A stretch of 64,000 nucleotides of DNA from Auanema rhodensis (taxonomy: Eukaryota; Animalia; Nematoda), in contig OZ059896.1 of assembly GCA_964057225.1 (NCBI GenBank), positions 13,516,001 through 13,580,000 of the forward strand. The letters run 5' to 3'. Under the pieces are notes generated by a model. It was not told where the DNA came from and made no database searches. It was given only the letters and a program-made list of their open reading frames with translations. The position numbers and the translations under genes are program-made. This document shows, in pieces, positions 8,051 to 16,600 of the stretch (its first letter is position 1; every line of letters starts with the position of its first letter).

Positions 8051-8285
8051 TCATCTTTTCCACCGGGATAATATGTTGTTGAATCTATTGCATTTTAATT
8101 TTTAGTTTATCTAGTTAGGTTCTTTATATTTTCATTGTTCTTCTGTTGCTCTGTTTATCTTGTTTCTCATCTTCTCTTCTGTTCTCCTCTCTATTTCTCA
8201 GATCTTTCATTCAACAGTATTCAAATTATTGCTATATTGCATTCTGTTCACTTCTTTCACTGGGCGTTTGTTGGAAAACTTGATA

Positions 8286-8395: not shown

Positions 8396-9764
8396 ATGGA
8401 ACACTTTTTATTTTCCCGGCCTCTATTGCAGAGAAATTTTAGTCAAAATTTGAAAGCTTGCTCTGCAGCTTACTTTGCTGGGGCAGATCATGATAAAGTT
8501 AGAGAAATAGCAAACGGAGGAAAGGTTCGCTTCTTCGGGATCTACGGTGCTCATTAACAGTTTAACCTTAAGATTCTCCTCCCAAATTCAGCATTAGACA
8601 ATCTCATCCGTCTTAATGTTCAATATCCTATGCTCTTCAAGGTTATTTTTTGAGTCTTGAGGTTAAAATTTCTTTAGCTTCAGGTCACGAATGAAATTAC
8701 TCAACGCGAAACTCACTGTGGAGTTCTGGAGTTTTCTGCTCCGGAAGGCCGTGCCTACTTACCTAACTGGATGATGCAACAACTTTGCCTTGAAGAAGAT
8801 AGCAACGTCAAAATAGAAATTGCCAGCTTACCTAAAGCAACTTTTGCCAAACTTAAACCTCAATCTCTAGACTTTCTTAATATTTCCAATCCTCGGTTTG
8901 TTTTGATGACAGAAACTTCTCGATTTTATTGATTTTAAGTGCTGTTCTTGAAGTTGAACTAAGAAAGTTTGCATGCCTAACAAAGAATGATAGAATATCC
9001 GTATTAGTACGTTCTCTATTTTTTTTTTAAATTTAAAAACAATCCTTTCAGTATGCCGACCAAAATTTGGAATTTCTTGTTCAAGAAGTCAAACCTTCTG
9101 ACGCTGTTTGTATCATTGAATGTGATTTAAACTTGGACTTTGATGCCCCTGAAGGATATGTTGAAGATTCAGAAAGAAGGCCTACTACCTCAATTAAGGT
9201 ATGTAAGATTATTAAAAAGTTTATACAAAGAAACAAACTAGGTTGTAAAAAAAACATAAATTATGTGAGAGTAACAATTGTGGGCTGTAATTAGAGTTTT
9301 CTCAAGGATATAGCTGATCTCATATCTGATAAACTTTATGTTGTAATAATATGGGATTTATTATATAATTTTTAAAAACGAATGTTTATACGTGCATGTT
9401 CCAGCCACCACCTCCTGCAGCCGATCTTCTGGCTATTCCTAGCACACAATTTACAGCGTTTTCTGGATCTGGTGTTCGATTAGACGGAAAGAAGAAGCCT
9501 TCGTCTAATAGTATATGCAGTGATGGCACTCCAGAAACTGTAGAGGCGTTGGGTCCTGTAATTTATCATTCGGACTACAAGCCAGGTATAGAAATGAATC
9601 AAAATGGCATTTCAACGTATGCTTTAGGCACATTGAATTTTATGCGCTACGACTACAAATCACGAATTGTTACTGAACAAGAAATCAAAGAAAAACTTGA
9701 AAATGCAAAGAAGCAAGCTTTACCTTTCCATGGAAGTAGTGCTACAATCCGAAAACGTTATTAA
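8396..9764 (+). CDS. ufd-1: Ubiquitin fusion degradation protein 1 (CDC-48/p97 cofactor), 7 exons
   Basis: NGGK|ILLPNSALDNL, YPMLFK, THCGVLEFSAPEGRAYLPNWMM, LPKATFAKLKPQS, AVLEVELRKFACLT, VCIIECDLNLDFDAPEGY and the SHP box FSGSGVRLDGK. Confidence 0.95.
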
Positions 9765-10692
9765 CATAGTTTCTTGTACAAAACAAATCTGCCCTTACGG
9801 TCATAATTTATTGAAGATATCCATAAGACTGGTGGAGGTTTCCCATATTTATTTTATTTGCATGGCTATTCATTGGGTATTATTACACTGGGTTTCTTCG
9901 TCTCTTTAAATCTCTACAATAAATTATGGTTTGATGAATTGCGTTTGATAGAATCTACATTATCACATGGAAAACATTCAACCCATAATACTTCAAATTC
10001 AATTCGAATTCTTTTTACTTGACATTCGGGTGGTCTCAATAGCTTTTATTTCTATCTCTTTCAGTCGTTTTTATAACTTTTTTTGGATGGAGCCTCGTTA
10101 GATGCGCTGATTCTGCCGACATAACGGGATAATGGGATGAACACGACAATTTGTCGCATTTCGTTTTTTTGCGAGTCTTGAAAAAGGTTTTTTAATACCG
10201 CTAAAGGTCGTTTACAGAATAGGTTATCACCATGCTTTATGGCTAGTTTGCTAGTTTTGAGGCTTCTGATGACGATGGTGATGATCTGGTTCTCATACTC
10301 TTGGTCACAATCACATCTGTATTCACCGTTACCTTGCAGGTTGATTCATTGCTTCTGCTAGCGAGATGCTATCTACAAGTAACTACCCGTATTCATGTCT
10401 CTCACTCCATCTTCAACCTCTCATCTTATAAACCTATAGCTCTCGATTAGTCTATCGCTATAGTTTTACATGAGAAGTGTGAGTTGTTAAGAAAATATTG
10501 AAGTTTTCGGGTTCTTTGAACTACAACTTTCATATCTATTTGTCTCATCTATCGTCTTTTTGTTCTTAAAAACCTATAAGAACCGAGTTCTTTCCACTGC
10601 TTGGAACATTGAAATGTTATTCCTTTTATATACTTCTTTCTTCTTCTTTGTTTTATCTTTTTTTGAAATATTTATCTAATAGAAAAATTATT

Positions 10693-10843
10693 TTATTCAT
10701 TATCAGTTAAATCATTTTCAATTACGTTCAAACTGGCTGATGTAGTTACATTTAAGATGAAAAATATGATTTTATCTCTTAGAACTTCAGGATTTGAAAA
10801 GAAATTGCCTTCATACCAGATTGATAGCTCTGGGAAGTCTTGT
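10693..10843 (-). CDS. Candidate duplicated alternative terminal exon (exon B) of IFT22
   Basis: A CTTATAG acceptor at 10845-10844 is in phase 2, the same phase as the IFT22 exon-5 donor. It reads (K)QDFPELSIWYEGNFFSNPEVLRDKIIFFILNVTTSASLN, which aligns without gaps to GCNLRHEGEHLKQVFYQFLVNV in the proximal last exon. The unspliced form ends VIENDLTDNE*, with AATAAA at 10697-10692. Confidence 0.55.
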
Positions 10844-11010
10844 CTATAAGTAGTTAAAAAGTTTTTTTTTTCAAATCATTGTGAGAACTCATGAGTAATA
10901 AATAGTTTGCACGTTACATGTGAAGGGGAGTGAATTGAGGAAAAACAAAAAAATATAACAAAAAAGAACGGAATCTTTATATTACTTTTACATATATGAT
11001 CAGATGGTGT

Positions 11011-11897
11011 TCAGTTGTCATCAAATCCAATCACTTCCTTTTCTTCTTTTCCTCGTCTATCCTTTAGTACATTACCATCACGACGACCATCATCATCCTC
11101 ATCATCATCATCATCATCATCCACCTGATCATCTTCTTCATTCTCCTCACCGTCATGGTGTTGTCCAGAAAAGATTGAATTGTCATTAGAGCGTTGAATG
11201 ACGTTCACAAGAAACTGATAGAATACTTGCTTCAAATGTTCTCCTTCATGACGAAGATTACATCCAACAAATACAGCTAGCGAAAGTCCAGCTATGACCC
11301 TGTTGACAATTCACATACAGAGAGAGGAAAAACTAACAAAAAAAATTGGCATTGATTCGGAAATCGTGTAGATAGAAAAAAGATTCTGTTACCAAAAAAT
11401 GAAAGATTTTTTTTATATAATATTCAAAAAAAGACAAAAAAAGGGAAAACAACTTACTTGAAAGCTGCAATATTGCCACTATTTGTGTTTCGATCACCCT
11501 TTTCATTCAGAACAACCATGACATTATCGTTCCGAAGATTTGTTTTTTTTATGAATTCCTCATACCTATAGATATATTTTCTTCTTATTTCTCATAGATT
11601 TCATGAAAAAAAAAGTTTTGATGACTCTCTTTATCTGATAGTATCATCTCACGAGCTAAGTAACTGTCAAGATGAATAGACGTAAGACTTGGCCAATCTA
11701 CCAGAATATGTCTGAAGGTAATCCTATCGGATTGTCCTTTCGATGTTCAATCAACCTTTCAATTTGATTGACCACAGTATTATGTTTTTCCATCACATAT
11801 ACATTAAGATTTGTATGAATTTCTTCGCTAACTTTTAGCCTGATTTCTCTTCCTTTCTTCCTCTTTCTATCTCAACTTCTTTCCTTCTCTCTTCAAA

Positions 11898-11933
<36 letters not shown>

Positions 11934-13520
11934 CCCCCTCTCTCTCTCCCTCCCTCTCTCTCTCTCTCTCTCTCCCTCCCTCTCTCTCTCTCTCTCTCTC
12001 TCTGTTTGTATCTTTCTTTCTTTTTCAGAAATCACTTTTCCTCTTGAAAGTCGAATAGATTTATGAAAAACCCATCTTTCCTTTCTGCTTTTTCCTTCAT
12101 ATCGTCTTTCTTAGTTCAATATCAATTTCATTTTGGATCAAGAAAGTTATTACCAAATAAGTAAATCTTCTCCTTTATCCGTATCCGGATCGGCAACCAG
12201 AATCACGCCCTCTACACCGTCCTTCAAAGCCGGCCAGCAGTTCCGATACCTGAATACGATAGGAATTGCATAAAAAACTTTTAAGATCTTATTTCTGTTT
12301 TCAACCTACTTTGTTCAATTTTATTTCGAAATTTAAAATTCAATTTATATGATATAGTTAAATAAAAATTTAAATTGTATTTTTACCTTATATCACCACT
12401 ACAATCCCACAACTCTACATCCACCTCTGCTCTTTGCCCTCTGATATCCAGTTCATTGCTCTCAAATTCCACTATACGAACACCTGGAAGTCAATTTTTT
12501 ATTCAACAAAGTTGGAACAAATATTTTTTTCTTTCCTACCTGCCACACGTGAACTTTTATACAACCTTTGGTTTGATATATAATATATTAAATTGCTAAT
12601 TGCCGTTAATATTAATCTCATTAAAATATTTTATAATTTACTAGAAATTGAACATCTAATCCAGGTTTTACCTAGATATCACACATGCAACTTGAATAGT
12701 TTCTAATTTCCATAACAAGACGGTGCGACCTAGATGAGTTTATAAATACAATTTTGAGTATTATGGAAATTTCATTTGAAGAATATTATTTTTCATTCCC
12801 TCTTCTTCAACGTATTTTCTTTCTCTCTATCTGTATCTCTTGCCCTCTTTGTGCTATATATCTTTCTTTCAATCTGTATTGAATCATTGCTCCAAATGTC
12901 TTCAATTCTCTATATAATATTATACAGTATAGTTAATAAAATTAATTATCTCAAAGTCAAATGAGCTGAGTTGAAAAGATGCAGTCCAGATGACTCAAAG
13001 AAACATCAGGAACTAAGTGATTGCTTGCTCAATTTCAGTCATTGATTTGTCTTTCGCTAAAACTTGAGCTAATGAACTCACTTATAGACATTTCATGATT
13101 TTTGCCTTTTAAGAATTGTTTACTTATCCATATATATCTACATGAATCTTTATATTATTCTCTTTTATTATCATTTTGTCTTCAAATACAAATATTATGA
13201 TTTTACCTTTCGTAGGACGATATTCTCCTAGAGATTCAGAATCAATAGCTTCAGCTAGATATGTAGAAATAGCTGATTTTCCAGCCTTAAAAGAGTAAAA
13301 AGGTTGATTGACATCGTGATTCATTTGCATTTTATCTATAAATATCCCCGGAGAATAGTTTAGTCATTTGATTTTAATTTGATAAGAAAAATAATATTTT
13401 CATTTAAATCTTTTGAGAATACTTGAAATTTCAAAAAAAAAAAAGAAGGAAAATCAATAATACCTTACAAGGTCCTAGTACAAGAATCTTTTTGGCTGGT
13501 CTTTCTTTAGTCCTATGCAT
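11011..13520 (-). CDS. ifta-2: IFT22/RABL5 Rab-like intraflagellar transport GTPase, 6 exons, acidic C-terminal tail
   Basis: Exons 13520-13464, 13285-13207, 12483-12387, 12249-12154, 11565-11458 and 11299-11011 are phase-compatible. Motifs: KILVLGPCKAGKS, EYRPTKGVRIVEFE, VELWDCSGD and CWPALKDGVEGVILV. Confidence 0.92.
11902..12002. repeat. (CT)n/(CCCT) polypyrimidine microsatellite in an IFT22 intron
   Basis: About 100 bp of CT repeats interrupted by CCC runs. It explains the ER-repeat ORF at 11835-12035. Confidence 0.9.
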
Positions 13521-13661
13521 AAGTTGGTTCTAAAAAGTATTTTTATGAAGCTTAATATGTAAATATATAAAATAAATTAAATTAATAAGAAGTTTTAAAT
13601 GATAAAATATATTTCAAATGAATATAATTCTTTCTTTTGTTGTTTAATACTAACCAACAAC

Positions 13662-13675
13662 ATCACCATAGTAAC
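13662..13675 (-). promoter_or_regulatory. X-box (RFX/DAF-19 site) upstream of IFT22
   Basis: ATCACCATAGTAAC (reverse complement GTTACTATGGTGAT) fits the relaxed nematode consensus RTHNYY-WT-RRNRAC and lies about 140 bp upstream of the ATG of a ciliary gene. Confidence 0.8.
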
Positions 13676-16600
13676 CATTAGCTACTATGTATGTATATTC
13701 TAGAAAAATGTTTCATAAAATAAAAAGTGTGAGAATAATTCTATTTATGTAAAATAAAAGAATCTAAAGAATATTTTAAATATTTATAAGCTTGCAAAGC
13801 GAAAAAGAACCTTCTTAACATCAAAATAATAATAAAATATTTGCTTGACCATCGGTAAATATGCTGAAAACTTCAATTTATACTATATAATTCATTCAAA
13901 TATACTGAATTTCTCAATACAATCTATAACTATGATTATAATATATTTTTAAATAAATATAGTCTGTCAATCTATATTATTTCTTTTCGTAAATCTTCAA
14001 ACTAATATCCCAAAATTAGTAAAATATAAGATTATATTTATGTTATTCTTTGTATATTATTTAATTGTTTTTCATCCAATTATAACAAATAACTAATGAT
14101 TTCCTGTTTCTCTGCTCCATCCTTTTCCTGCTTTTTAGAATTGTGATAATCTAAGGCTATGGTTGTACAGTTGACAGAGCAGAAACCTTTTTGTTATTTT
14201 CCTTCGATCTGACCTCTTGTGTCCAAAAGAGATGTATAATGAGCGGCAGGAGGTCGACCGGACCGGAAAGCTGGAAGGAGATGAACGAACGAGAGTGGTA
14301 AAGTCTGGTGAGATCCATCATGCCAAAGAGGAATGGAGATGAGCTGGCTTTCTCAACACTAGAGATAGAATGAGCTATTGAAGCGGATACTTGAAAATGT
14401 TCCATTTGTGAGGGTTATAATGCCTTCTTAAACTTGAGAAGAATATATTGTATACTATATGTATCAGGAACTCCGATACTTTCATTGCCCCTAGCCTTTT
14501 ACCCATCATCATCAGCACAATTCCACTTTCATATTTCCCTATCTTCTATGGTTCACTCTCTATCCCTCTCTCTTATTCTCTTTCTCTCCATGCTCATCTC
14601 AGGCTGGTAGTCCATTATCATCAACTTATAAACATGACGAAAACCACTTTTGCACACATTTTATAATAGATACTTCAAAGATTTATATAAAATATTTATT
14701 TATATAATACATATATGTATTAAGAAGATAATTTAAATTGTAGCAAATTGTATAATATTTTAACTTTTTCTACCCTCATTTTCGAACTTGTCACTCTATC
14801 CAACATCTTTATAACTTTGAAACTTTTTTTTTCAAACAACCTTACTTATATAATCTCTTCTAATCTTATTAAATACCTTATAATCTTTCAAAATATATAT
14901 TATAATCATATTATACGCATATTATTTTCCATTTTCATTTAAAATAAAAAAACTTGTAATGTCGTTACTATGATTCATAATTTCTGTTGTAATCCTCCCT
15001 TAGATTGCTCTACTTGATGACCTTTCCTACCCATACTAAGTTCTTCAATTCTTAATCAAAACCTCAAAAACTCATCTCTCCCTCATCTATTTTTCTAATT
15101 TTCTTTACATTTTTCAATTTTAAGTTAGTATATTAATTCAATTAATCAGCTAAACACTGTTTTTCTGCTTCCGATTCTTTTTTTTTTCGTTTTTGCCATT
15201 CAAATTTATTTCATTTCATCCTCTCTCATAACTCTATATACTCTATGATTTTAACCTCTTAAGTTGAATGGCATCTACCCATCTGTCCGTTTAAGGGCAT
15301 GTTCTTTCTATGTCAAATGTTATATAGAAATAACAATTTTTTCTTTTTTTTTTCATTCTATCTCCTTTTACTATCTTTATTGAAATATCTCCTTTTTTTT
15401 GTTTTTAAACTTTTAGATTTATTTTTTCCTTTTCTATGAAAATTTCTTTTATTTCAATTTTGTACTCTTTTTTTACTTTTTTTTTATATTAAGATAGATT
15501 GTTTATTGGTACTAGTAAAGAACCTATAAGATGCTTCAATGTTTCCTTATATTGCTCCACTTTTCTCTGAAAATTGTTCTCATATAAGGGTTTGCTTAGA
15601 TGTTAATAAGCTTTTCATTTTCTCATTGCTTCATATCCATCTTTCTATAGATATTTCACTATATCCTCCCCTTCCCTCCTTCCCTCCTTCACATATCTAT
15701 CTATCTCTCTCTCTAATTCTTCTTTTCTTTTTCTCTCACTTTCTCTTCATATTCGTACATCATATTACTCTATCTCTCTCTAGTTCACTCATATCCACGC
15801 CATATCATCCTCAATTCCATAATTATTCGTTCTATCTATGATTATGTAAGCCAAACAGCTTCGTGGCCCATTTCCATATTTGTCATCTCATCCCCCCTCT
15901 CAACCGTTTTCCAACCATTTCTCTTTTTCTCTCACCTTTTTATATTTTCTTTTTATGGTTAAACCATTCCATGTACAACTTGACTAATGAGATTCGAGTA
16001 TCGTTCACACTTCTTCTTCCATTACGTGTCCTTCTGTATTGAATCTCATTAATTCATTTTCCACCTCCATCCTCTACTCTCTTGTCTTGTTCCACTGTCC
16101 TCTTCTTATATTTGTTCCACCTCTTCCATCTCCTGACCTTTTCCGATTCATAACCATAAATCCATATTTTCATGCAATATTTTCTTTATTTCAGAATATG
16201 ATGCTACAACGTCTTCTCTAACATCTGACACTTTTTTATCTTTCATTTCAATTCTTCAACTCAATTTTCTATTGTCATTCGTCATATCTGAGAAGTTAGA
16301 TGACATGACATATAGCAAGCCGCTTTGACATCAAGTTATAACTTGACAGAACCTAACTAACAAGAGCTTTGAGTAAAATTATTTTGAAATATCCATTTTC
16401 ACTGATATGGTAAGAAGCAGCTAATTTGCCTCTCTCTTTCTTCTCTCTTGTTATTCCTCATAACATATTCTCATTTTTCAATGAATGAATGAGCTAGCTT
16501 TACCATCTGGTTTAAGCTTTTTCTCCTCTCCTTCCTTTTCTTCATTATCGAAATTAGGCTCAATTGATTTTACCTTGTGTAAAAACAACATATAATCTGC

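Follow-up and report, generated by a model that had tools for sequence, protein, structure and literature searches.

The IFT22 gene of the nematode Auanema rhodensis lies on the minus strand of the window analysed here (the whole 64,000-nucleotide stretch of contig OZ059896.1, in whose coordinates all positions are given), and it raises the question of whether one small GTPase can be given two different C-terminal endings by a single gene. The preliminary description of this DNA had proposed that an IFT22/ifta-2 gene is followed, shortly after its normal stop, by a second last coding exon that exchanges the end of the protein. Our analysis suggests that this second exon, exon B, probably defines a genuine but minor Auanema-specific isoform, in which an alternative coding ending would be added through the choice of a distal splice acceptor. 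The gene has six exons in its canonical form, which were placed by reading the sequence, from spliced RNA contigs and by translation:

13520-13464, minus strand: IFT22 exon 1, with its ATG at 13520-13518
13285-13207, minus strand: IFT22 exon 2, with the P-loop GPCKAGKS
12483-12387, minus strand: IFT22 exon 3, with VRIVEFE and, further on, WDCSGD
12249-12154, minus strand: IFT22 exon 4, with the CWPA motif
11565-11458, minus strand: IFT22 exon 5, whose donor leaves two codon bases; the last exon common to both endings
11299-11011, minus strand: IFT22 exon A, canonical as last coding exon, with beta6, the G5 region, alpha5 and an acidic (GAT)n tail; its stop codon occupies 11013-11011

In translation, exons 1-5 joined to exon A encode 241 residues, and exon 5 joined to exon B would bring the protein to 195 residues. 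By its sequence, the gene is a plain orthologue of the IFT22/RABL5 (ifta-2) small GTPase, so that this part of the preliminary description was borne out by the minus-strand exons, the orthologue matches, the motifs and all five splice junctions in RNA contigs. A search with the exon 3 peptide, which is 84-87% identical to strongylid IFT22, and word searches with its matches led to IFT22/RABL5/IFTA-2 proteins across nematodes and animals. The protein of exons 1-5 and A is closest to that of Auanema melissensis (Auanema sp. JU1783), at 94% identity, and shares 63-68% with strongylid IFT22; the characteristic GPCKAGKS (P-loop GxxxxGK[ST]), VRIVEFE, WDCSGD and CWPA motifs are all present in the spliced translation, in columns that are invariant or nearly so in an alignment of 30 sequences. 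Pfam searches with single-exon translations gave nothing useful, and the protein collections searched held neither A. rhodensis' own proteins nor B isoforms from its transcripts. IFT22 of Trypanosoma brucei, Chlamydomonas and C. elegans is known to bind IFT74/81 and to travel with IFT trains (PMC9753473; PMC5902210), and in C. elegans the protein, IFTA-2, belongs to cilia and has been linked to dauer and lifespan signalling (PMC5902210).

Two repeat-rich stretches within the gene deserve a brief description. The long poly-Asp/Glu tail of exon A, which the preliminary description had noticed, is encoded by a (GAT)n-rich stretch at 11073-11133 (minus strand) and is specific to the species: the A. 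melissensis protein is without it and ends about 50 codons earlier, and the acidic tails of several Caenorhabditis IFTA-2 proteins, which end in DDF, are unrelated to it. Intron 4 contains a long (GA)n/(GAGAGG)n microsatellite at 11890-12030, which was flagged as a repeat during the mapping of RNA contigs.

The arrangement downstream of the exon A stop, on which the question turns, is as follows:

11010-10844, minus strand: spacer from the A stop to exon B; part of the 3' UTR when A is used and intron when B is used, with unbroken RNA coverage
10867-10850, minus strand: block before the B acceptor, AAAAAACTTTTyAAyTAC followed by AG/A; conserved in the DNA alignment with the A. melissensis locus
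10843-10693, minus strand: exon B, alternative last coding segment of 49 codons and TAA with no start codon of its own; frame conserved with A. melissensis
10697-10692, minus strand: AATAAA poly(A) signal, which overlaps the B stop codon and is probably used by both mRNA forms
10725-10676, minus strand: proposed 50-nt mini-intron; the GT-AG letters are present, the splicing is unsupported

The acceptor AG of exon B occupies 10845-10844 and the first base of the exon, at 10843, lies 167 nt beyond the A stop, which agrees with the second exon of matching phase that had been placed about 170 bp after the stop; the acceptors of exons A and B both fit the phase-2 donor of exon 5. Exon B is open for 49 codons and its TAA, at 10695-10693, falls inside the AATAAA at 10697-10692, again as originally described. 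No ORF initiated by ATG, GTG or TTG covers B on the minus strand, so the frame is translatable only when spliced on. Near the A stop the sole signal is a TATAAA at 10981, earlier judged weak, and the RNA contigs continue past it.

Expression was assessed in four small runs of a single study (X1, X2, X3 and X5), taken as contigs and mapped to 9600-13800; the contigs are spliced and therefore derive from RNA. All five junctions from exon 1 to exon A were found in contigs of X1, X2 and X5, with no intron coverage, and the junction of exon 5 to exon A (11458 to 11299) was accordingly present in three of the four runs. No contig in any of the four runs joins 11458 to 10843, the exon 5-to-B junction whose search had been proposed as a check; contigs lose rare variants, and its absence from them thus sets no upper limit on the usage of B, nor does it lend support. 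An X1 contig covering 10603-11072 leads without a break from within the coding part of A past its stop and across the spacer and the whole of B, an X2 contig (10720-10916) passes the B acceptor unspliced, and an X3 contig spans 10845-11072. The B sequence is thus part of the 3' UTR of the exon-A mRNA. The unbroken contigs from A through B also mean that this mRNA does not end at the TATAAA; the RNA contigs show no separate poly(A) site for exon A as the upstream terminal exon, and with the sole AATAAA at 10697-10692 the exon-A mRNA most likely uses the signal at 10697, which both mRNA forms probably share.

Three further readings of these contigs were set aside. The preliminary description had, as one of two options, let exon B continue over the mini-intron at 10725-10676 into a polybasic tail, and had thought of a charge-switched isoform; the X1 contig 10603-11072 crosses the mini-intron unspliced, and it is the unspliced end (IEN..NE and stop) that A. 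melissensis shares, so that the mini-intron and its tail were rejected and the charge switch is left unsupported. An X3 contig of exons 1-5 ends exactly at 11458, which could be taken for a branch of alternative splicing, but intron retention gives the same end. The end of another X3 contig at 10845 was likewise rejected as a splicing branch point, because it is at odds with the k-mer overlap that a merge point should show.

The principal evidence for exon B comes from the sister species. In A. melissensis, two products with consecutive accessions have been deposited, CAI4227159.1 (197 aa) and CAI4227160.1 (192 aa), which are identical over residues 1-145 and then continue with an A-type or, in CAI4227160.1, a B-type ending. 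Only the longer product is on record as a gene, as is expected when two products belong to one gene. Both endings map to a single A. melissensis locus (L001) in the same exon order, with B starting 163 nt after the A stop (167 nt in A. rhodensis), and the same AATGAATAAAAT arrangement, with the stop within AATAAA, is found there. The annotated B product joins exon 5 directly to B, whose phase fits the exon-5 donor in both species. The AG/A acceptor and the 18-nt block ahead of it are conserved between the two species, and the remainder of the spacer is hardly alignable. AUGUSTUS in BRAKER2 normally gives an extra isoform only when hints support one, and TSEBRA may keep a transcript in which not every intron is supported. 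The A. melissensis annotation was made by BRAKER2 with poly(A) RNA-seq hints and merged by TSEBRA (PMC9984802). Judged from this pipeline, RNA junction support for the A. melissensis B isoform is likely.

Comparison of the two species also allows the coding status of exon B to be examined. Over exons 1-5, identity at codon positions 1, 2 and 3 is 0.90, 0.98 and 0.46, with an amino-acid identity of 0.94, a dN of 0.03 and a dS that was not computable; the first 46 codons of exon A give 0.96, 0.98 and 0.65, with an amino-acid identity of 0.96 and a dN of 0.02. The IFT22 introns are only 42-47% identical between the species even with gaps, and neutral divergence, as judged from synonymous sites and introns, is saturated. 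Exon B nevertheless aligns ungapped from its first base over 40 codons (120 nt), with identities of 0.47, 0.68 and 0.42 at the three codon positions, an amino-acid identity of 0.30, a dN of about 0.6 and a dS of about 1.9. The peptide pair in this frame scores +63 with BLOSUM62, against a mean of -35 (sd 14) for residue shuffles and a best score of 11 among 3496 stop-free 40-residue control windows of the A. melissensis locus. All five other frames are interrupted by stops in one or both species and score 2-14, and the probability of a stop-free run as long as B, given the local base composition, is 0.013 in A. rhodensis and 0.021 in A. melissensis. The preliminary description would have given up exon B had its frame been broken in a close relative; in A. 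melissensis it is open. We regard these comparisons together as good evidence that B is kept as coding sequence, though a very fast-evolving one: its peptide is 30-34% identical between the species, where the remainder of the protein reaches 94-96%, from which it follows that the constraint is weak. By these estimates the non-synonymous rate of B is some 20-30 times that of the rest of the protein, and B is still under purifying selection.

The further proposal that exons A and B are tandem duplicates fared less evenly. A gapless alignment of B to A does exist, with 6/22 identities and a one-residue offset from the exon starts, but BLASTP of A against B returned no alignment at E<=100. An HMM of the canonical last exon, based on 35 nematode sequences, gave the A ORFs 33-34 bits (33 for that of A. 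rhodensis) and left the B ORFs at noise. With hhalign, the two B peptides matched the canonical nematode alignment with a score of 13.9 (P 0.0096), reached in 0/200 column shuffles, and did so in the expected register, with B residues 11-34 on canonical positions 14-37 (the N of G5; E..[RK]; F..N). With non-nematode animal IFT22 C-termini, the profile match of B was likewise marginal (score 15.2, P 0.014, same register, reached in 1/100 shuffles). Exon B probably began as a copy of the canonical last exon a very long time ago and has diverged strongly since; its position, its phase and a weak profile signal make an origin by duplication of A plausible, while BLASTP and HMM searches, as noted, find nothing.

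Whether the B ending could rebuild what exon A supplies was approached by structure prediction. AlphaFold was run on the sister-species proteins with A-type (P0037) and B-type (P0041) endings; the homologues in the alignments were cut before the last exon, so that neither ending was given family information. For the A-type protein (mean pLDDT 82.5, pTM 0.80) a strand at 155-159 and a helix at 165-191 were predicted at pLDDT 84-92, and for the B-type protein (mean pLDDT 69.8, pTM 0.68) a long helix at 139-159 and a hairpin at pLDDT 51-67. Under equal conditions, then, the canonical beta6 and alpha5 were built for the A-type and not the B-type ending. In Foldseek searches both models matched T. 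brucei IFT22 first, with TM-scores of 0.57-0.65 for A and 0.43-0.55 for B, the top matches of the A-type model being solved IFT22 structures (8ruy_T, 6ia7, 6iae and 6ian). These models lend no support to the clean exchange of strand and helix by which exon B would swap in a new C-terminal helix, and the non-canonical ending predicted for B is of too low a confidence to argue against one.

The B-type ending appears to be confined to Auanema. A search for exon B in related nematodes, proposed at the outset as a check, succeeded in A. melissensis and failed in three more distant rhabditid loci: after the last IFT22 exon of C. auriculariae, Nippostrongylus brasiliensis and Mesorhabditis spiculigera no B-like exon was found, the matches being noise on the wrong strand or far away. 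Among the other annotated IFT22 proteins that we retrieved, from nematodes and from other animals, none has a B-type ending. Entries from Haemonchus contortus and metaclust (P0001, P0038 and P0002) have unrelated short endings straight after the exon-5 equivalent, and in one of the entries the exon-5 peptide occurs three times, each time continued differently. These odd endings look like intron read-through or assembly loops, and could hide alternative endings in strongylids.

Exon B also has a close neighbour on the opposite strand:

9626-10627, plus strand: terminal exon of the UFD1 orthologue with its long 3' UTR, from high-depth contigs running from 9626 to 10599-10627 and tblastx to the UFD1 of the A. 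melissensis locus

This convergent gene spans 8432-10627 (plus strand), with its stop near 9770, and is syntenic in A. melissensis. Its RNA contigs have about 10 times the depth of those of IFT22; as they reach 10599-10627, the UFD1 3' UTR would be about 830-860 nt long and end 66-94 nt from the B stop, a gap so small that the 3' ends of IFT22 and UFD1 nearly touch or overlap. The loose end of a contig implies a short UFD1 intron at about 9583-9625. A patch of the UFD1 3' UTR at 10095-10145 resembles positions 8228-8278 of the A. melissensis locus (tblastx 59% over 17 codons, with an internal stop) and may be a conserved UTR element.

Several of these observations can be read against exon B. 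It may be an unused ORF in the 3' UTR, perhaps the dead relic of a duplication, with the A. melissensis B product an artefact of gene prediction. The RNA contigs join exon 5 only to A and run unspliced across B, neither BLASTP nor the HMM detects similarity between A and B, AlphaFold leaves the GTPase fold incomplete with the B ending, B is known from one genus only, and an ORF of such length is not very rare over all frames of an AT-rich UTR. We nonetheless consider this unlikely, since the open frame, the position and phase of the acceptor and the ungapped alignment scoring +63 have all been kept despite saturated neutral divergence, since identity within B peaks at codon position 2 and is lowest at position 3, and since AUGUSTUS in BRAKER2 normally adds isoforms only with the support of hints.

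Quite unlikely, in our assessment, is that the conservation of B reflects a non-coding constraint, such as 3' UTR elements, the poly(A) context or the overlap with the UFD1 3' end, with the open frame as a by-product. The conservation lies in one of six frames, at the amino-acid level, and is robust to residue shuffling, and an RNA-level constraint does not predict the absence of stops in both species. Location fits such a constraint better, as B falls within a transcribed 3' UTR, 66-94 nt from the end of the UFD1 transcript, and the AATAAA context is conserved; the nucleotide identity of B (0.53, ungapped) is also practically no higher than that of its flanks (0.52), a value that is gap-optimised and hence inflated, whereas B is ungapped over 120 nt. 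Translation of B by another route, whether through a donor within or downstream of exon A or in the form of a small protein of its own, seems highly improbable: the second B codon in A. melissensis is indeed ATG, but this ATG is not conserved in A. rhodensis, where no start-codon ORF lies over B on the minus strand, the annotated A. melissensis product links exon 5 straight to B, and the B phase fits the exon-5 donor in both species.

The reading we favour remains that of an alternative coding ending. In the proposed mechanism, the exon-5 donor at 11458 would pair with either of two acceptors. Use of the proximal acceptor at 11299 would yield the major mRNA, in which coding ends in A and the 3' UTR extends through B to the AATAAA at 10697; use of the distal acceptor at 10843 would skip A and add a 49-residue B ending with its stop inside the same AATAAA. 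The two endings would thus be exclusive in the protein through acceptor choice within one terminal region, and not through separate poly(A) sites. We infer that A. rhodensis uses the 11458-to-10843 junction and produces a functional B protein. Of the original claim of an alternative C-terminal coding exon, the conserved frame, acceptor and peptide and the two annotated products of A. melissensis speak in its favour, and the junction in A. rhodensis is the part that the RNA contigs did not supply.

IFT22 is among the least understood IFT-B subunits; its loss in C. elegans leaves cilia intact and disturbs dauer and lifespan signalling (PMC5902210). If the B isoform is real, a natural isoform with an exchange of beta6, G5 and alpha5 would be a tool for studying what the C-terminal third of the protein contributes to nucleotide binding, IFT74/81 docking and cargo choice. 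A bolder proposal, and in our estimate an improbable one, is that this Auanema-specific isoform, in which a fast-evolving module replaces the last strand, G5 and the C-terminal helix, handles nucleotides or binds partners differently in some of the ciliated sensory neurons. In Auanema, passage through the dauer stage decides between hermaphrodite and female fate. Given the part that IFTA-2 plays in C. elegans dauer signalling (PMC5902210), the isoform could bear on that switch. The reach of these findings is modest, being confined to one nematode genus and to an isoform whose use was not seen in RNA contigs, but the locus illustrates how a coding ending can be hidden in what appears to be a plain 3' UTR in RNA assemblies. 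Both IFT22 products are already listed for A. melissensis in its public annotation, but no paper describing them was found in the literature searched.

Alternative C-terminal exons are already known in small GTPases, although for IFT22 no description was found in that literature. In the KRAS gene, alternative fourth exons exchange the C-terminal helix and tail of the GTPase to give KRAS4A and KRAS4B. As with KRAS4A/4B, the proposed IFT22 endings would be exclusive in the protein through an alternative terminal coding exon. The swap in IFT22 begins earlier, however, before beta6 and G5, so that part of the nucleotide pocket would be exchanged as well; neither ending carries lipidation or polybasic membrane-targeting motifs, and no A. 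rhodensis RNA contig joins exon 5 to the second ending. The analogy with KRAS4A/4B, which had been drawn in the preliminary description, fails on mechanism: in the RNA contigs the upstream ending of IFT22 lacks a separate poly(A) site, and the downstream exon is contained in the 3' UTR of the A form. RAB6A and RAB6A' offer a second comparison, in which near-identical, internal, mutually exclusive exons arose by tandem exon duplication. IFT22 exons A and B are likewise adjacent, of the same phase and of similar size and would serve the same structural element, which makes a tandem duplication origin plausible; unlike those of RAB6A, they are terminal, show no BLASTP similarity and retain only a profile signal (P about 0.01). 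The B-type ending, absent from other retrieved IFT22, and the species-specific acidic (GAT)n tail on A set the Auanema rhodensis gene apart from canonical IFT22, while the protein of exons 1-5 and A is like that of C. elegans IFTA-2 and of T. brucei IFT22 (PDB 6IA7, 6IAE and 6IAN).
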